Origin: Haliotis cracherodii
Taxonomy: Eukaryota
Direction of reading: 5' to 3'
Length of the DNA: 64,000 bases
Assembly (NCBI RefSeq): GCF_022045235.1
Contig: NW_027266319.1
Coordinates: 55,986,001-56,050,000 of the forward strand
The notes beneath the pieces were generated by a model. It had not been told where the DNA came from. It was given only the letters and a program-made list of their open reading frames with translations, and made no database searches. Below are positions 3,685-31,099 of the stretch, in pieces; positions within the stretch are counted from its first letter, which is position 1, and every line of letters begins with the position of its first letter. Made by a program: the position numbers and the translations under genes.

Positions 3685-3904
3685 GTGAGTAATACTTTAT
3701 GCACTATCTGTCTGATTAGTTTACGTGTAACTTATCATTTCAGTTGGCATTGGTTACAAAATGTGGATTTAACTGAGGATTTAATTGTTTGTAATGATAG
3801 TCAGTCGTCAAATCCATTACATCTTAAGCAATCAACGTTTCATAAGGCAATCAGCAACAATAATCACACCCACATGAGAATGCGGCTTCTTTAAACAATT
3901 CAGT

Positions 3905-4165
3905 GGGGCACGGGGGGCTCAGTCGTCTAAGGCGCCGCAATTCGCTGTGCTGAGTTGCGTTCCTTGGGCACGCCAGATTGTGGGTTTGAATCCCGGTTCA
4001 CCCCGATTATGTTTCTACGTTTGTAAGCACCATACCCGTGCTCGTGGGTCTCGCCGAAGTGGTAAACGTCTAAAACCTGCATCACTGCGGCCTTCCCTCC
4101 CATATTAAGCTGACACGCCGTGATATAACTGTTAATAGCTGCGTTAAACCCAACTCGCTCACACG
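3905..4165 (+). mobile_element. tRNA-derived SINE (family 1) in intron 1 of A2; same insertion in A1, A3-A6; other copies about 10786-11048 (+), 12115-12270 (-), 37145-37360 (-), 52490-52940 (-)
   Basis: tRNA-like head with A-box-like ggctcagtcgtctaaggcgc and B-box-like gggtt(c/t)gaatccc, and a (CACT)n/(CTCA)n tail. A TSD-like taaaacaatt flanks it on both sides in A5. Absent from A7. Confidence 0.8.
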
Positions 4166-4203
4166 CTAAATCAATTTATTTTCACTGCAGAATACATCCC
4201 AAG

Positions 4204-5426
4204 ATGCGTTTGTTCCTTGTCCTCCTGCTTGTGGCCATAGTCTCCATCCCTCAGTCTGATGCCTGGGGACGACGGAGACGACGGTTCGTTAGATGGCGCA
4301 CAGTTGGCACAATAGCAAAGATTGGAGCCAGGGTGTTGTTGGGTGAGTGAAGCCAAAGAGTACTTCATTAAGTGCCTGACATACAGTATCTTCTATTTTC
4401 CCAAACTGTAATGGAGTTACGTTTTAAGTTATAGAACAATGAGCGGCTGTAGTAGGACCAAATCGGTGATGTGTCAAGTACATTAACGTCTCTCTTTTAC
4501 ATCAGGTTCAAATGAAAGTAATAAATTAAATTCCTTAAAGGCCAACTCTGCTTTCAGTGTAAAAATTGTAACCGAAAGGATGCTTTCTATAATCATGCAG
4601 TTGTGTAGACCGATGCTCATGATATAAGTCACTGGATTGTCTGTGCCACACCCAGTTATTTAAGTCCCACTGTTATATTACCTGGAATATTGCTGAACGA
4701 AAACGGACACCGAACATTGTTTTTGAATGTATGAAAATATTACATGGACTAGTCTATTCTAGAAAACGAACATAATGAAAATGTGATCATGTCATTAAGC
4801 ACTACAGAATGAGACAGAATGGTGTTCGCTATTTGTTTTGATGTAAATCTTAGTCAGCCAGCCGAAGAGCTACATACGATGACGATCTGAAATGGAAACG
4901 AGTATATGTTTTGGAATGTTACTGTAGATGCATATGAATATGTTCATTTGATATCAATACTCATAGCCTGATTAAAAGTGACCACTATCTCATATTCCTT
5001 AACCGAAAATGCATTCGTGTTCTTTCATTTTGTATCTTTCCAAACATGACTATTTTCTTTCAAGGCAAACGTAATGTGGATAACCTTGATACAAACATGG
5101 ACGGCACAATTGACCTGTCCGAAGCTGAGGCGCTAATGGACAGACGATCGGCCATGGAGCTCCTTTCGTTCTCAGATGAAAATGGTAAGAGCTTTTGCCT
5201 TCAACTTCATTGATACAAATGAAATGTTTATTACTTTTAAAATAATGTAATTATTTGTCAAATGTTTGTATTTGTTTACTCTCATGGGTAATGTGGACCC
5301 TTTTCCCGAATAAATCTGACTCCTGAACATTTATTCTGACTGACTGCAACAACCTTTCTCCATTTAGGAGACTCAAGCGTGAGTTTGGAAGAGTTCGCAA
5401 GGAGCATCAACAACTTGGAGCAGTGA
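4204..5426 (+). CDS. Secreted cationic (candidate antimicrobial) peptide precursor with acidic two-EF-hand propeptide, copy A2, 105 aa
   Basis: Coding exons 4204-4342, 5065-5184 and 5368-5426. All junctions are GT-AG, both coding introns are phase 1, and the frame is open to TGA. Hydrophobic 20-aa signal ending SDA, Arg-rich 26-mer, GKR site, EF-hand loops DTNMDGTIDLSE and DENGDSSVSLEE. TATA box, non-coding exon 1 and AATAAA are present. Confidence 0.9.
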
Positions 5427-5674
5427 GTCAAATGTAAGGTGGAGCAAATCTTACTGCAATGATCCGTTTTATACAGTAGAAACCGTCATCCGTTCAACAT
5501 AACTGTATCTGAAAATGTATGCTTCAGCAATAATTTCATGTCAAATATGCCAAGATCATATGATTTGATGTATTTCTTTTGTAGATCACTCTATTGAAGA
5601 GACACTGGCATCGCACTTTGAAGGCGATTTCGAGGATGTATTCCTGAATAGTGTTCCCACAAGTCAATAGTTTC

Positions 5675-5680
5675 AATAAA
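5675..5680 (+). terminator. Polyadenylation signal of A2 (equivalents at 9117, 13986-13991 minus, 20561, 22183-22188 minus, 29995)
   Basis: AATAAA about 250 nt after the stop, followed by a GT-rich tract (ctttgttgtgtctt); conserved in A2-A7. Confidence 0.65.
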
Positions 5681-6077
5681 TAATTATAACAATCACCTTT
5701 GTTGTGTCTTGCTCATTAAAGACGTCTTTACAGGTGTCATTTCAGACAACAGGTGATCCAATATGTAATGCTTGTATCTGATTTCTAATGTGTTCACTAC
5801 CACCATCTCGTTCAACATAATATTGATCTGCAATCGTACAACAACATAATCAGCAAAATGTATATTATATCAAGTATATCTGATATACAATATTTGTTTT
5901 GTTTGCTGTTTGTTTAATCGTACAACATTACCAGCAAAGGTAGTTCCTCAAAAGGAGATATGACATGAACATATGTATGTTCACATTGTTCTACACTGAC
6001 ATCTTTTGCAGTTTTAAAACAAATATATTCAAATAATATCATCATGAGATGAGAAAGGTATATGATGTTTAATTGTT

Positions 6078-7645: not shown

Positions 7646-8868
7646 ATGCGTTTGTTCCTTGTCCTCCTGCTTGTGGCCATAGTCTCCATCCCTCAGTCTG
7701 ATGCCTGGGGACGACGGAGACGACGGTTCGTTAGATGGCGCACAGTTGGCACAATAGCAAAGATTGGAGCCAGGGTGTTGTTGGGTGAGTGAAGCCAAAG
7801 AGTACTTCATTAAGTGCCTGACATACAGTATCTTCTATTTTCCCAAACTGTAATGGAGTTACGTTTTAAGTTATAGAACAATGAGCGGCTGTAGTAGGAC
7901 CAAATCGGTGATGTGTCAAGTACATTAACGTCTCTCTTTTACATCAGGTTCAAATGAAAGTAATAAATTAAATTCCTTAAAGGCCAACTCTGCTTTCAGT
8001 GTAAAAATTGTAACCGAAAGGATGCTTTCTATAATCATGCAGTTGTGTAGACCGATGCTCATGATATAAGTCACTGGATTGTCTGTGCCACACCCAGTTA
8101 TTTAAGTCCCACTGTTATATTACCTGGAATATTGCTGAACGAAAACGGACACCGAACATTGTTTTTGAATGTATGAAAATATTACATGGACTAGTCTATT
8201 CTAGAAAACGAACATAATGAAAATGTGATCATGTCATTAAGCACTACAGAATGAGACAGAATGGTGTTCGCTATTTGTTTTGATGTAAATCTTAGTCAGC
8301 CAGCCGAAGAGCTACATACGATGACGATCTGAAATGGAAACGAGTATATGTTTTGGAATGTTACTGTAGATGCATATGAATATGTTCATTTGATATCAAT
8401 ACTCATAGCCTGATTAAAAGTGACCACTATCTCATATTCCTTAACCGAAAATGCATTCGTGTTCTTTCATTTTGTATCTTTCCAAACATGACTATTTTCT
8501 TTCAAGGCAAACGTAATGTGGATAACCTTGATACAAACATGGACGGCACAATTGACCTGTCCGAAGCTGAGGCGCTAATGGACAGACGATCGGCCATGGA
8601 GCTCCTTTCGTTCTCAGATGAAAATGGTAAGAGCTTTTGCCTTCAACTTCATTGATACAAATGAAATGTTTATTACTTTTAAAATAATGTAATTATTTGT
8701 CAAATGTTTGTATTTGTTTACTCTCATGGGTAATGTGGACCCTTTTCCCGAATAAATCTGACTCCTGAACATTTATTCTGACTGACTGCAACAACCTTTC
8801 TCCATTTAGGAGACTCAAGCGTGAGTTTGGAAGAGTTCGCAAGGAGCATCAACAACTTGGAGCAGTGA
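7646..8868 (+). CDS. Cationic peptide/EF-hand precursor, copy A3 (same as A2)
   Basis: Coding exons 7646-7784, 8507-8626 and 8810-8868, offset 3442 bp from A2. No differences seen in the exons. Confidence 0.88.
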
Positions 8869-14239: not shown

Positions 14240-15455
14240 TCACTGCTCCAAGTTGTTGATGCTCCTTGCGAACTCTTCCAAACTCACGCTTGAGTCTCCT
14301 AAATGGAGAAAGGTTGTTGCAGTCAGTCAAAATAAATGTTCAGGAGTCAGATTTATTCGGGAAAAGGGTCCACATTACCCATGAGCGTCAAAACTAATAC
14401 AAACACTTGACAAATAATTACATTATTTTAAACATTTCATTTGTATCAATGAAGTTGAAGGCAAAAGCTCTTACCATTTTCATCTGAGAACGAAAGGAGC
14501 TCCATGGCCGATCGTCTGTCCATTAGCGCCTCAGCTTCGGACAGGTCAATTGTGCCGTCCATGTTTGTATCAAGGTTATCCACATTACGTTTGCCTTGAA
14601 AGAAAATAGTCATGTTTGGAAAGATACAAAATGAAAGAACACGAATGCATTTTCGGTTAAGGAATATGAGATAGTGGTCACTTTTAATCAGGCTATGAGT
14701 ATTGATATCAAATGAACATATTCATATACATCTACAGTAACATTCCAAAACATATACTCGTTTCCATTTCAAATCGTCATCGTATGTAGCTCTTCGGCTG
14801 GCTGACTAAGATTTACATCAAAACAAATAGCGAACACCATTCTGTCTCATTCTGTAGTGCTTAATGACATGATCACATTTTCATTATGTTCGTTTTCTAG
14901 AATAGACTAGTCCATGTAATATTTTCATACATTCAAAAACAATGTTCGGTGTCCGTTTTCGTTCAGCAATATTCCAGGTAATATAACAGTGGGACTTAAA
15001 TAACTGGGTGTGGCACAGACAATCCAGTGACTTATATCATGAGCATCGGTCTACACAACTGCATGATTATAGAAAGCATCCTGTCGGTTACAATTTTTAC
15101 ACTGAAAGCAGAGTTGGCCTTTTAGTCATTTAATTTATTACTTTCATTTGAACCTGATGTAAAAGAGAGACAATAATGTACTTGACACATCACCGATTTG
15201 GTCCTACTACAGCCGCTCATTGTTCTATAACTTAAACCGTAACTCCATTACAGTTTGGGAAAATAGAAGATACTGTAGGTCAGGCACTTAATGAAGTACT
15301 CTTTGGCTTCACTCACCCAACAACACCCTGGCTCCAATCTTTGCTATTGTGCCAACTGTGCGCCATCTAACGAACCGTCGTCTCCGTCGTCCCCAGGCAT
15401 CAGACTGAGGGATGGAGACTATGGCCACAAGCAGGAGGACAAGGAACAAACGCAT
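14240..15455 (-). CDS. Cationic peptide/EF-hand precursor, copy A4
   Basis: Minus-strand coding exons 15455-15317, 14594-14475 and 14298-14240. Splice sites intact; same 105-aa protein as A2. Confidence 0.9.
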
Positions 15456-19096: not shown

Positions 19097-20312
19097 ATGC
19101 GTTTGTTCCTTGTCCTCCTGCTTGTGGCCATAGTCTCCATCCCTCAGTCTGATGCCTGGGGACGACGGAGACGACGGTTCGTTAGATGGCGCACAGTTGG
19201 CACAATAGCAAAGATTGGAGCCAGGGTGTTGTTGGGTGAGTGAAGCCAAAGAGTACTTCATTAAGTGCCTGACATACAGTATCTTCTATTTTCCCAAACT
19301 GTAATGGAGTTACGGTTTAAGTTATAGAACAATGAGCGGCTGTAGTAGGACCAAATCGGTGATGTGTCAAGTACATTAACGTCTCTCTTTTACATCAGGT
19401 TCAAATGAAAGTAATAAATTAAATGACTAAAAGGCCAACTCTGCTTTCAGTGTAAAAATTGTAACTGACAGGATGCTTTCTATAATCATGCAGTTGTGTA
19501 GACCGATGCTCATGATATAAGTCACTGGATTGTCTGTGCCACACCCAGTTATTTAAGTCCCACTGTTATATTACCTGGAATATTGCTGAACAAAAACGGA
19601 CACCGAACATTGTTTTTGAATGTATGAAAATATTACATGGACTAGTCTATTCTAGAAAACGAACATAATGAAAATGTGATCATGTCATTAAGCACTACAG
19701 AATGAGACAGAATGGTATTCGCTATTTGTTTTGATGTAAATCTTAGTCAGCCAGCCGAAGAGCTACATACGATGACGATTTGAAATGGAAACGAGTATAT
19801 GTTTTGGAATGTTACTGTAGATGTATATGAATATGTTCATTTGATATCAATACTCATAGCCTGATTAAAAGTGACCACTATCTCATATTCCTTAACCGAA
19901 AATGCATTCGTGTTCTTTCATTTTGTATCTTTCCAAACATGACTATTTTCTTTCAAGGCAAACGTAATGTGGATAACCTTGATACAAACATGGACGGCAC
20001 AATTGACCTGTCCGAAGCTGAGACGCTAATGGACAGACGATCGGCCATGGAGCTCCTTTCGTTCTCAGATGAAAATGGTAAGAGCTTTTGCCTTCAACTT
20101 CATTGATACAAATGAAATGTTTAAAATAATGTAATTATTTGTCAAGTGTTTGTATTAGTTTTGACGCTCATGGGTAATGTGGACCCTTTTCCCGAATAAA
20201 TCTGACTCCTGAACATTTATTCTGACTGACTGCAACAACCTTTCTCCATTTAGGAGACTCAAGCGTGAGTTTGGAAGAGTTCGCAAGGAGCATCAACAAC
20301 TTGGAGCAGTGA
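19097..20312 (+). CDS. Cationic peptide/EF-hand precursor, copy A5
   Basis: Coding exons 19097-19235, 19958-20077 and 20254-20312. One substitution in the propeptide (EAEALM to EAETLM); mature peptide unchanged. Confidence 0.9.
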
Positions 20313-22436: not shown

Positions 22437-23659
22437 TCACTGCTCCAAGTTGTTGATGCTCCTTGCGAACTCTTCCAAACTCACGCTTGAGTCTCCTAAA
22501 TGGAGAAAGGTTGTTGCAGTCAGTCAGAATAAATGTTCAGGAGTCAGATTTATTCGGGAAAAGGGTCCACATTACCCATGAGAGTAAAACAATACAAACA
22601 TTTGACAAATAATTACATTATTTTAAAAGTAATAAACATTTCATTTGTATCAATGAAGTTGAAGGCAAAAGCTCTTACCATTTTCATCTGAGAACGAAAG
22701 GAGCTCCATGGCCGATCGTCTGTCCATTAGCGTCTCAGCTTCGGACAGGTCAATTGTGCCGTCCATGTTTGTATCAAGGTTATCCACATTACGTTTGCCT
22801 TGAAAGAAAATAGTCATGTTTGGAAAGATACAAAATGAAAGAACACGAATGCATTTTCGGTTAAGGAATATGAGATAGTGGTCACTTTTAATCAGGCTAT
22901 GAGTATTGATATCAAATGAACATATTCATATACATCTACAGTAACATTCCAAAACATATACTCGTTTCCATTTCAAATCGTCATCGTATATAGCTCTTCG
23001 GCTGGCTGACTAAGATTTACATCAAAACAAATAGCGAACACCATTCTGTCTCATCCTGTAGTGCTTAATGACATGATCACATTTTCATTATGTTCGTTTT
23101 CTAGAATAGACTAGTCCATGTAATATTTTCATACATTCAAAAACAATGTTCGGTGTCCGTTTTCGTTCAGCAATATTCCAGGTAATATAACAGTGGGACT
23201 TAAATAACTGGGTGTGGCACAGACAATCCAGTGACTTATATCATGAGCATCGGTCTACACAACTGCATAATTATAGAAAGCATCCTTTCGGTTACAATTT
23301 TTACACTGAAAGCAGAGTTGGCCTTTTAGTCATTTAATTTATTACTTTCATTTGAACCTGATGTAAAAGAGAGACGTTAATGTACTTGATACATCACCGA
23401 TTTGGTCCTACTACAGCTGCTCATTGTTCTATAACTTAAACCGTAACTCCATTACAGTTTGGGAAAATAGAAGATACTGTATGTGAGGCACTTAATGAAG
23501 TACTCTTTGGCTTCACTCACCCAACAACACCCTGGCTCCAATCTTTGCTATTGTGCCAACTGTGCGCCATCTAACGAACCGTCGTCTCCGTCGTCCCCAG
23601 GCATCAGACTGAGGGATGGAGACTATGGCCACAAGCAGGAGGACAAGGAACAAACGCAT
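22437..23659 (-). CDS. Cationic peptide/EF-hand precursor, copy A6
   Basis: Minus-strand coding exons 23659-23521, 22798-22679 and 22495-22437. Carries the EAETLM variant; splice sites intact. Confidence 0.9.
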
Positions 23660-28539: not shown

Positions 28540-29745
28540 ATGCGTTTGTTCCTTGTCCTCCTGCTTGTGGCCATAGTCTCCATCCCTCAGTCTGATGCCT
28601 GGGGACGACGGAGACGACGGTTCGTTAGATGGCGCACAGTTGGCACAATAGCAAAGATCGGAGCCAGGGTGTTGTTGGGTGAGTGAAGCCAAAGAGTACT
28701 TCATTAAGTGCCTCACATACAGTATCTTCTATTTTCTAAAAACTGTAGATTTAGTTAAGGTTTAGGTTTATAGGAGAATCAGCGGCTTTAGTAGGCTGTA
28801 GTGAGACATAGTGGGTGATGTATAAAGTGCATTAATCTCACTCCTTTACATCATGTTCAAATGAAGGTAATAAATGAAAAGACAAATCTGCATTCAGTGA
28901 AAGAAATATAACCGACAAGATGCGTTCTATAATCATGCCACTGCTTAGACCAATGATGTAAGTCAATGGATTGTCTGGTTCACACTCCATTATTTAAAGA
29001 CTGCTGTTATATTACCTGGAATATTGCTGATAGAAAACAACCACAGACACAATAAAATATTGTTTTACAATACATGAATGTTTCGTTTGAAAAGTCTATT
29101 CTAGTACACAAACATAATGAAAATGTGCACATGTCATTAAGCAATACAGACTGTTTATAAGTGTATCTTAGACACTCTCCAGAAGAGCTACATGCGGTGA
29201 GATCAAAAGGAAAAGAGTAATGGAATAGCTTTGTGTTCAGTGTATTTAAATACTCATATTCATCGCCTGATTAACATGACTACTAACACATCCTCCATAA
29301 CCGAAACTCCATTCATGTTCTTTCATGTTGTATCTTTCCAAACATGACTATTTTCTTTTAAGGCAAACGTAATGTGGATAACCTTGATACAAACAAGGAT
29401 GGGACAATTGACTTGTCAGAAGCTGAGACGCTAATGGACAGACGATCGGCCATGGAGCTCCTTTCGTTCTTAGATGAAAATGGTTAGAGCTTTTGTATTC
29501 AATTTCATTGATACAAATGATTTGAATTTCTTCATTTGTCAAGAAGTCTTGATAGCATAGAAGATGAATACTTGTGTGTTTGTATTTACATTGACCATCA
29601 TTGGGAAATTGGACCCGTTTTAAAGTATATCCGATAGACTCATGAATATTTATTCTGACTGACTGCAACAACCTTTCTCCACTTAGGAGACTCAAGCGTG
29701 AGTTTGGAAGAGTTCGCAAGGAGCATCAACAACTTGGACCAGTGA
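28540..29745 (+). CDS. Cationic peptide/EF-hand precursor, diverged copy A7
   Basis: Coding exons 28540-28678, 29363-29482 and 29687-29745. Signal and mature peptide identical to A2; propeptide NVDNLDTNKDGTIDLSEAETLMDRRSAMELLSFLDENGDSSVSLEEFARSINNLDQ. The exon 3 donor is a weaker GTTAGA. Introns are clearly diverged and intron 1 lacks the SINE. Confidence 0.85.
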
Positions 29746-31099
29746 GGCAAATGTAAGGTAGAGCAAATCCTTCTGCAATGATTCCGTTTTGTAAAGTAGA
29801 AACCGCCATCCGTTCAACATGTCTGTATGTGAAAACGTATGTTTAAGCAACGATTTCATGTCAAATATGCCAAGATCATATGATTTGATGTACTTCTTTT
29901 GTAGAGCACTCCATCGAATAGGCACTGGCATCGCACTTGGAAGACGTTCTCAATGATATTTTCCTGAATAGTGTTCCTACTGAAAGATGGTTTCAATAAA
30001 TCACTATAGCAATCACCTTTGTTGTGCCTTGTTAATTACATGTCTTAATAGCAGTCATTTTAGACAGCAGGTGATGCAATATGTAATGCTTGTAACTGAT
30101 TTCCAATGTGTTCAATGCAACCATCTCCTTCAAGATATGGATCTGCAATCGTATAACAACATAATCAGCAAAATGTATATCAAGACTTAGTACAACTGAC
30201 ATACAATAGGTTTGCTTTGAAGATGAACAATGGGTATCTTTTCTGCATCATAATACGCAGTGCATATAATTCACATTAACATATCTCGGGACAATCCACT
30301 CATGGCAATCTCTCTTTAAAAATGACAAACGCTTTCCAGGATCATGACAAATCTATTCTGAAAGCAGAGTTCATTGTGCGATTCCCATTATAACATAAGC
30401 ATATGTTTATGTATCACTGTCAAATAGTGATGATACCGTGTGTGTGCAATTTAGGAATGCATTTAAAAGAAACAAACAAATTCCTGTTTTCATGGCAACA
30501 AGTTTGACTTTGACCCTGTTCAACAACATCGAGAACAACCTCGACATGATACATTAACATCATCAACAAATAGGGACCCATCAACAGAGCTATTTAAAAC
30601 CTTAGGTCAACTATTTATTTAACGTTACCGATAATATGCTACCTCGAGGGACACCCTGATTGTAATCGTAAATATCAGACATGGTGGAACCCATATGTTC
30701 CTGGAAAGGCCCCATCTCATTCAGATCTTTTAAAATTCCATATTTCCAGATGGTATCATAAGCTTTTTCTCAGTCGGAAAGTTTTGGTATAGTGTGTTGT
30801 TTATTTATTATGCCATTTTTAACAAACGTTTCCAATCGCACCAAATGGTCAATGCCGCTTCTATTTTTCCTAAACTGCCTCTGGGTTCCTGGAAATGCCT
30901 ATCTGTTAAAAAATGTGACACAGTGGGGTAAAGGACCTATCAGCCCCATCTCATTCAGATATTTTAAAATTCCATATTTCCAGATGGTATCATAAGCTTT
31001 AGGCTATGGTGTGTTGTATATTTATTAATCAATTTTTAACAAACGTTTCCAATCGCACCAAATGGTCAATGCTACTTCTATTTTTTCTAAACTTCTTCA

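Follow-up and report, generated by a model that had tools for sequence, protein, structure and literature searches.

The precursors of mussel antimicrobial peptides follow a standard layout, in which a signal peptide, the peptide, a dibasic site and an anionic extension succeed one another, and in mytimycin the extension holds an EF-hand (passages of PMC8004829 and PMC5577615). According to passages of PMC8004829, the signal peptide of the mytimycin precursor has 23 residues, the mature peptide 54 residues including 12 cysteines, and the extension, which carries 'an EF hand-motif', 75 residues. This EF-hand lies after the dibasic site and shows high conservation among variants, its role, as of 2021, 'remains unknown', and the extensions of the other mussel antimicrobial peptides are described as having no defined 3D structure (same passages). 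The role of an EF-hand in the precursor of a secreted host-defence peptide is a question left by this work on mytimycin. Here, we analysed a small gene on the forward strand of a 64,000-nucleotide stretch of the genome of the black abalone, Haliotis cracherodii (assembly GCF_022045235.1, contig NW_027266319.1, positions 55,986,001 to 56,050,000; hereafter the window). Its layout is that of a host-defence peptide precursor with an EF-hand extension, the kind known from mytimycins. The family to which this gene belongs offers a simpler test case, with a linear, cysteine-free and easily synthesised peptide, a tail of 56 residues, and natural variants that differ in the spacer before the first loop (5 or 9 residues) and in an internal basic pair.

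Positions 5065–5426 of the window comprise exons 2 and 3, the 3′ two-thirds of a small gene of three exons that lies on the + strand. The spliced reading is identical, letter for letter, to a database protein of 105 amino acids (P0001; NCBI "uncharacterized protein [Haliotis cracherodii]"), which was found by searching with exon 2 and on which the whole-precursor analyses were run. In order, this precursor consists of a signal peptide, a 26-residue Arg/Trp peptide, Gly-Lys-Arg and an acidic tail of 56 residues that contains two EF-hand loops of 12 residues each, a gene model and layout in which we have high confidence. The cleavage point of the signal peptide was placed from the hydrophobic core and a conserved SDA followed by W (cut between A and W), and cleavage and amidation of the peptide follow the established rules for convertase, carboxypeptidase and PAM. 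The same amidation rule, with the Gly before Lys-Arg as amide donor, is stated for myticalins (passages of PMC5577615). Phase-1 introns divide two Gly codons, one at the exon 1/2 joint and one at the exon 2/3 joint. Contigs of four public runs (X1, X2, X4 and X15) were compared with positions 4150–5700 of the window. The features of the gene are as follows.

4204–4342, + strand: exon 1, encoding MRLFLVLLLVAIVSIPQSDA-WGRRRRRFVRWRTVGTIAKIGARVLL and ending with the first base of the Gly47 codon
4204–4263, + strand: signal peptide MRLFLVLLLVAIVSIPQSDA in exon 1, 20 codons, by translation; conserved across the 32 relatives
4264–4342, + strand: predicted mature peptide WGRRRRRFVRWRTVGTIAKIGARVLL in exon 1, 26 codons, and the first base of the Gly47 codon, by translation; donor GT at 4343
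4343–5064, + strand: intron 1, phase 1, GT..AG, from exon-only cover in X1 and X2 and loose contig ends in X2
5065–5184, + strand: exon 2, (G)KRNVDNLDTNMDGTIDLSEAEALMDRRSAMELLSFSDEN plus one base of the next Gly codon, by translation
5065–5072, + strand: rest of the Gly47 codon and Lys48-Arg49, the Gly-Lys-Arg processing and amidation signal; GKR in 31/32 relatives, YGR in one
5073–5087, + strand: NVDNL, a short remnant of the entering helix of EF-hand 1 (helix 51–54 in the model)
5088–5123, + strand: EF-hand loop 1, DTNMDGTIDLSE, by translation and column conservation
5124–5174, + strand: exiting helix of hand 1, turn M71-D72 and entering helix of hand 2, AEALMDRRSAMELLSFS, 17 residues (helices 64–70 and 73–83 in the model)
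5142–5147, + strand: Arg73-Arg74 inside AEALMDRRSAMELLSFS, by translation
5175–5184, + strand: first part of EF-hand loop 2, D84 E85 N86 and the first base of Gly87, by translation; donor GT at 5185
5185–5367, + strand: intron 2, phase 1, GT..AG, which splits loop 2 and is skipped in contigs of three runs
5368–5426, + strand: exon 3, (G)DSSVSLEEFARSINNLEQ and then the stop, by translation
5368–5393, + strand: second part of EF-hand loop 2, the rest of Gly87 and then DSSVSLEE, by translation
5394–5426, + strand: exiting helix of hand 2, FARSINNLEQ (helix 93–104 in the model), and stop codon TGA at 5424–5426
5434–5584, + strand: intron in the 3′ untranslated region (3′UTR), GT..AG; joint 5433 to 5585 in three contigs of X1 and one of X2, with cover resuming at 5554–5657

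The tail encoded by exons 2 and 3 is supported as an EF-hand pair under constraint, and is quite probably one that binds calcium. The preliminary description of this locus had listed D1, N3, D5, G6, I8, D9 and E12 in loop 1 (DTNMDGTIDLSE), which translation of 5088–5123 confirmed. It had likewise given loop 2 (DENGDSSVSLEE, encoded by 5175–5184 and 5368–5393) as D1, N3, D5, V8, S9 and E12 followed by F, with Ser at position 6, and had placed the five residues NVDNL between GKR and loop 1; both are present in the translation. The window holds six complete copies of the gene and one partial copy, and when all six reading frames of the window were scanned with a relaxed EF-loop pattern, only the six gene copies gave a match; the loops are therefore not a chance motif.

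Conservation was assessed in a family collected by word-filtered profile searches, in which 8000 candidates were scored. A total of 33 proteins was recovered at E ≤ 0.001, all from Haliotis where the source was named (H. cracherodii, H. rufescens, H. rubra and H. asinina). Of these, 32 could be aligned, and the family counts given throughout refer to those 32. The family forms three or more groups with very different peptides (24–44 residues, charge +7 to +18) built on a common plan: a conserved signal peptide, an Arg-rich peptide starting with W or LF, Gly-Lys-Arg (31/32) and the EF-hand tail. Within loop 1, D1, D5, G6, D9 and E12 were invariant (32/32), and N3 and I8 were each found in 31/32. 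Within loop 2, the corresponding counts were 31/32 for D1 and D5, 27/31 for S6 (Gly in one), 28/31 for V8, 30/31 for S9 and 30/30 for E12, and position 3 was N in 16 members, D in 14 and K in one. The oxygen-ligand pattern, D-N-D-D-E in loop 1 and D-N-D-S-E in loop 2, was thus kept in 30–32 of the 32 members except at position 3 of loop 2. Mean entropy across the ten side-chain ligand columns was 0.20 bit versus 1.23 bit across the other tail columns, and a fraction of 4e−5 of 100,000 random draws of ten tail columns was equally conserved. The gap between the loops was 17 residues, free of indels, in 30/32 (the members with both loops found). The ratio of non-synonymous to synonymous substitution rates (dN/dS) for exon 2 was 0.06–0.35 in 26 of 28 paralogue pairs and undefined in the other two. 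Across the genome, exon 2 had 37 intact matches, none with a stop, and 22 of these lie in one array around the window.

Structure prediction pointed in the same direction. An AlphaFold2 model built with 32 sequences (model 2) gave the tail the topology of an EF-hand pair at moderate confidence (predicted local distance difference test, pLDDT, 71–79), with helices at 51–54, 64–70, 73–83 and 93–104 and strands at 61–63 and 90–92 that form a short pairing between the loops. The entering helix of hand 1 is limited in this model to the four residues 51–54, after a coil at G47–N50. The identifiable structural neighbours found with Foldseek and VIA were EF-hand proteins throughout. The best VIA matches (ALG-2, calmodulin, calcyphosine and SCaMC-1) had Z 6.8–7.8 and root-mean-square deviations (rmsd) of 1.8–4.4 Å over 53–63 residues, with ALG-2 at the top (Z 7.8) and calmodulin at Z 7.2–7.6 over 60–63 residues, all below 8 and so within the range that the tool calls possibly a common arrangement. 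The lowest rmsd, 1.8–2.2 Å over 55–59 residues, was obtained with CBP40, calcyphosine and SCaMC-1, and the neighbours also included calmodulin and centrin bound to melittin. At the level of sequence, EF-hand_1 matched 30/32 family members at E ≤ 0.01, several relatives hold a precomputed PF00036 label, and the family profile matched calmodulin in PDB at E 1e−6; exon 2 alone gave sub-threshold EF-hand matches only against Pfam and PDB.

Two other fold assignments were considered and set aside. Lanmodulin was the top PDB sequence match for exon 2 (E 4e−4), from loop similarity alone, and a lanmodulin-like fold was dropped because model 2 shows an ordinary EF-pair topology. A Dockerin-like 'F-hand' was also rejected, Dockerin_1 matching 3/32 members with a best E of 0.0036. 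Among the matches inspected, a search beyond the family yielded no wider kin: a HMMER search with exon 2 against 1.84 billion representatives gave 79 matches at E ≤ 0.001, three of them family members (P0005, P0012 and P0054), and the 16 further matches inspected (19 of the 79 in all) appear to be secreted multi-EF-hand repeat proteins, mostly apparently bacterial. Protein atlas scores of 0.76–0.85 were within the range of shuffled proteins and serve as leads only. A literature search, outside which most subscription journals lie, found no paper describing the abalone family.

In P0001 the predicted peptide has a net charge of +9 and the tail one of −11, and the peptide contains two Trp and no Cys. 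Its C-terminal 16-mer is strongly amphipathic, with a helical hydrophobic moment of 0.59 that was reached by 1.7% of 5000 shuffles. The peptide is also the most variable part of the precursor; in one and the same gene pair, dN was 0.41 for the mature peptide and 0.045 for exon 2. Its variability gives no evidence of positive selection: dN/dS was 0.33 where defined, and synonymous sites were saturated or misaligned in more distant pairs. In those paralogues whose peptides are longest and most basic, the C-terminus bears an additional acidic tail. All the elements of a host-defence precursor layout were found, namely a signal, a cationic peptide, a Gly with a dibasic site and an anionic extension, with conserved ends around a hypervariable middle.

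Mytimycin, the cysteine-rich antifungal peptide of Mytilus, is the closest published case and shares with the abalone precursor the signal, the host-defence peptide, the dibasic site and the anionic EF-hand extension. The two differ in the peptide (12 cysteines in mytimycin, linear, cysteine-free and predicted to be amidated in abalone), in the extension (75 residues versus 56 with two loops) and in their hosts, a bivalve and a gastropod. As the mature abalone peptide lacks Cys, it is not a mytimycin, and the likeness is one of description, which either homology or convergence could have produced. Myticalins and modiocalins resemble the abalone family in having a conserved signal, a hypervariable, Arg-rich and cysteine-free peptide, a Gly with a basic site, Lys-Arg, an anionic extension and a phase-1 intron near the cleavage site, and in forming multigene families (passages of PMC5577615). 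They are unlike it in that the same passages mention no EF-hand in myticalins, and in that peptide and cleavage site share an exon in myticalin genes, whereas in the abalone gene the cleavage site is encoded by the next exon. Sequence similarity to them was not detected, the word-filtered family profile search having returned Haliotis only.

The gene is spliced and transcribed. In X1 and X2, both guessed to be RNA, the three coding exons and a further 3′UTR exon were covered and the introns were almost empty. The joint from 5183/5184 to 5367/5368 (exons 2–3, GT..AG) was present in contigs of X1, X2 and X4, the last also guessed to be RNA, and loose contig ends of X2 just before 5064–5066 carried the end of exon 1 with one letter different. 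Cover by X15 was even over introns and exons and thus DNA-like. Most placed contigs were 90–95% alike to the locus, so that several of them belong to paralogous genes or to related species.

The classic role of an anionic pro-piece is to neutralise and solubilise a cationic host-defence peptide until its release by a convertase. The opposition of charge within the abalone precursor, together with the anticorrelation of peptide and tail charge across the family (r = −0.56, 28 full-length members, shared ancestry ignored), matches this role, and the retention of GKR in 31/32 members lends it further support. We therefore favour, tentatively and at a little less than an even chance, a reading in which the tail is the calcium-folded anionic pro-domain of a secreted precursor, with calcium acting as a structural cofactor and not as a regulatory switch. 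A convertase would cut after Lys-Arg, the basic residues would be trimmed and the Gly would amidate Leu46, and this processing would free a membrane-active, probably antimicrobial, peptide. The tail would bind two Ca2+ on entry into the calcium-rich secretory pathway and would remain loaded, so that the role of calcium would be to give the tail its fold, that of a compact anionic domain. This folded domain would hold the cationic peptide soluble and harmless until cleavage and may, we infer, aid its calcium-dependent condensation or its packing or sorting into granules. That the role of the tail is a constitutive one of this kind could well be the case, although we stop just short of calling it probable. 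Should the tail act as a chaperone or sorting tag that calcium folds, this would explain the safe storage of highly basic lytic peptides. The family, very large in this genome with 37 intact copies of exon 2 and annotated as 'uncharacterized', is a candidate immune effector family in black abalone, an endangered and disease-prone species.

Several results weigh against a calcium-folded pro-domain, among them the neglect of shared ancestry in the charge comparison and the low range of the VIA Z values. P0001 is under the Pfam curated cut-offs for EF-hand_1 (22.8 against 25.4 bits), EF-hand_5 (21.6 against 25.9), EF-hand_6 (19.5 against 25) and the pair model EF-hand_7 (20 against 30). None of the 32 members fits a strict PROSITE-type EF-hand pattern, owing to the Ala after E12 of loop 1 and to Ser6 in loop 2; a first AlphaFold2 run with 13 sequences (pLDDT 59) showed no EF pair and a continuous helix at 65–80; and Foldseek gave no match at E ≤ 0.001. 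The runs are only presumed to be RNA, and contig depth gives no ranking of expression. Furthermore, a neighbouring gene on the − strand (Gene B, from 36753 downwards) has a signal-peptide/Arg-rich exon, MRLLLVFLLLALVMLPDAEGWRRRRLRRIIRRIVRHG..., that resembles H. asinina P0094, and the relaxed EF-loop pattern run over the window detected no EF-hand loop 1 near it. Gene B may be related to the family and have lost the EF-hand tail, in which case the tail is perhaps dispensable for making such a peptide. The sub-threshold Pfam scores, the failure of both loops to fit the strict pattern and the first model, along with the moderate confidence of the second, would also suit relic loops, with a tail that has lost calcium binding and become an acidic, largely disordered spacer. 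This is very unlikely given that no columns of the tail are better conserved than those of the side-chain ligands, that the loop spacing is free of indels, that dN/dS is well under 1 and that all 37 genomic copies of exon 2 are stop-free. A calcium switch, as the preliminary description proposed, would make different use of the same fold: the EF pair, as one calmodulin lobe, would clamp the C-terminal amphipathic helix of the peptide or use it as a missing entering helix, and Ca2+ occupancy would set the exposure of Lys-Arg and the release of the peptide. The tail does resemble a calmodulin-type lobe in its two 12-residue loops with D1, N/D3, D5 and E12 and in the predicted strand pairing. The VIA alignments to calmodulin span model residues 43–105 and place the equivalent of the first helix on RVLL-GKR-NVDNL, the last 16 peptide residues are strongly amphipathic, and complexes of calmodulin and centrin with melittin are among the structural neighbours. 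From general EF-hand knowledge, the conserved Ser6 for Gly in loop 2 could lower affinity to a calcium-sensitive range. The abalone tail is unlike calmodulin in its 17-residue linker, where profile alignment needs 8 extra residues, in an entering helix of 4–5 residues, in Ser6 of loop 2 and in being secreted rather than cytosolic. The proposed requirement for the entering helix of hand 1 to span the cleavage site applies only to the 19/32 members with a 5-residue gap between GKR and loop 1, in which hand 1 is short of most of an entering helix. It fails for the 13/32 members with a 9-residue spacer (DVQDDLASA), whose hydrophobics at the usual helix positions mean that hand 1 can be complete without the peptide. 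Structure prediction of the precursor, which had been suggested as a check, delivered the EF-pair topology of the tail but no confident grip on the peptide: residues 18–49 have pLDDT < 50 and the predicted template modelling score (pTM) is 0.40, so that no contact between peptide and tail is predicted with confidence, and G47–N50 is coil. Likewise, the second dibasic site (MDRRS) does lie between the loops in this copy, but the column pair of Arg73-Arg74 is RR in 12 members, KR in 8 and KK in one (dibasic in just 21/32) and RQ in 5, ER in 4, AR in one and NR in one. A conserved second cleavage site is hence unlikely, and RR was rejected as such for the family as a whole.

The calcium supply also bears on a switch. 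On its way out of the cell, a protein carrying a signal peptide passes through compartments rich in calcium (endoplasmic reticulum, Golgi and granules) and ends up in a sea-water-like body fluid with about 10 mM Ca2+, and so never meets low calcium. An EF-hand of ordinary affinity would thus always be loaded, and a switch would need an unusually weak site. Convertases that cut at Lys-Arg are themselves Ca2+-dependent, which confounds the proposed experiment with EGTA (ethylene glycol-bis(β-aminoethyl ether)-tetraacetic acid). With several points against it, a switch as a family-wide mechanism is an attractive hypothesis that we consider distinctly unlikely, although it would represent a new control mode for such peptides. 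More doubtful again is its narrower form, in which a one-lobe 'calmodulin' borrows the peptide helix and calcium, perhaps with pH, gates convertase access at Gly-Lys-Arg and release of the lytic peptide. Here, the second site would be weakened by Ser6 and its occupancy would shift between an acidic granule and sea-water-like haemolymph or mucus. If true, the peptide would be kept in check by a form of autoinhibition that has not been described for antimicrobial peptides, and the same mechanism might account for the EF-hand of mussel mytimycins. A different possibility is that the tail is a product in its own right, an extracellular small calcium-binding protein (of mantle or extrapallial fluid, shell repair, mucus or signalling), with the peptide as a co-product or carrier. 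The tail is conserved and the peptide variable, as this would predict, and small secreted molluscan EF-hand proteins called shell-related are known in PFMG1 and EFCBP of pearl oyster (passages of PMC3120837) and Hdh-SMP5 of Pacific abalone (passages of PMC10741955). No Arg-rich peptide or Gly-Lys-Arg is described for these proteins in the same passages, and Hdh-SMP5 differs in layout, with a 16-residue signal peptide and loops at 36–48, 56–68 and 112–124 (passages of PMC10741955). The family profile search, word-filtered and with 8000 candidates scored, found no sequence link to shell EF-hand proteins: every protein at E ≤ 0.001 with a named source was from Haliotis, and none was named as a shell protein. 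An invariant GKR next to a hypervariable, cationic and amphipathic peptide is, moreover, a hallmark of host-defence precursors (myticalins, passages of PMC5577615), and we judge a tail made for its own sake to be unlikely. Least probable of all is a neuropeptide or hormone precursor like Helix HCS2/pleurin, likewise a secretory precursor of a gastropod, in which amidated peptides occur together with an EF-hand region. The title of Bogdanov et al. places putative neuropeptides together with an EF-hand region in one gene, and the text ties the HCS2 gene to pleurin and PRXamide peptides (passages of PMC8398477); a Gly-Lys-Arg amidation signal is likewise present in the abalone precursor. By description, however, HCS2/pleurin is a neuronally expressed source of several short PRXamide peptides, whereas the abalone precursor holds one long peptide of +7 to +18 and not several short conserved PRXamide copies. 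This peptide is hypervariable between paralogues, and dozens of near-identical tandem copies would be unusual for such a gene.

Besides the gene at 4204–5426, exons 2–3 of the other copies in the window were placed by sequence comparison.

8507–8868, + strand: copy 2, exons 2–3, identical
14240–14594, − strand: copy 3, exons 2–3, coding sequence identical
19958–20312, + strand: copy 4, exons 2–3, with A69T
22437–22798, − strand: copy 5, exons 2–3, with A69T
29363–29745, + strand: diverged copy A7, exons 2–3 (exon 2 29363–29482, exon 3 29687–29745), with M58K, A69T, S83L and E104D

The four substitutions that had been reported for A7 (M>K, A>T, S>L and E>D) are present and, on comparison of the copies, none falls on a ligand position. 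Exon 2 of A7 has 4 synonymous and 3 non-synonymous differences (dN/dS 0.19). Across the whole of A7 (28540–30038), exon 1 differs at 1/139 bases and exon 2 at 7/120, and the flanks are about 82–84% alike to the reference copy, a pattern that fits patchy gene conversion.

Beyond the window, matches to exon 2 on contig C56 comprised the 22 of the array (55.90–56.06 Mb), 5 at 53.86–53.90 Mb, 5 of the P0004 type at 0.816–0.840 Mb, 3 of the P0008 type at 2.345–2.370 Mb and one at 0.721 Mb, and a single further match was found on contig C23. Some of these loci depart from the copy described here. At C56:53887500–53892600, position 8 of loop 1 is Thr instead of the hydrophobic Ile. In three long paralogues of the P0004 type (L003–L005), intron 1 lies three residues further upstream, so that exon 2 starts ...AIGKR, and a fourth coding exon adds the acidic tail SDPLLQKQLAEEFADAFEDDAE. 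At C56:718700–723800, the peptide exon of a P0094-like copy shows an in-frame stop when aligned by tblastn, so that this copy may be a pseudogene.

Just upstream of the gene, positions 3900–4110 of the window are GC-richer and begin with a tRNA-derived-like start, ggggctcagtcgtctaaggcgc..., which on reading of the sequence only makes them a candidate short interspersed nuclear element. Within intron 1, the segment at about 4566–4669 is a very abundant dispersed repeat, with word depths of 10^4–10^5 in all four runs, including the DNA-like X15, and with many loose contig ends at 4601–4612 and 4642–4651.

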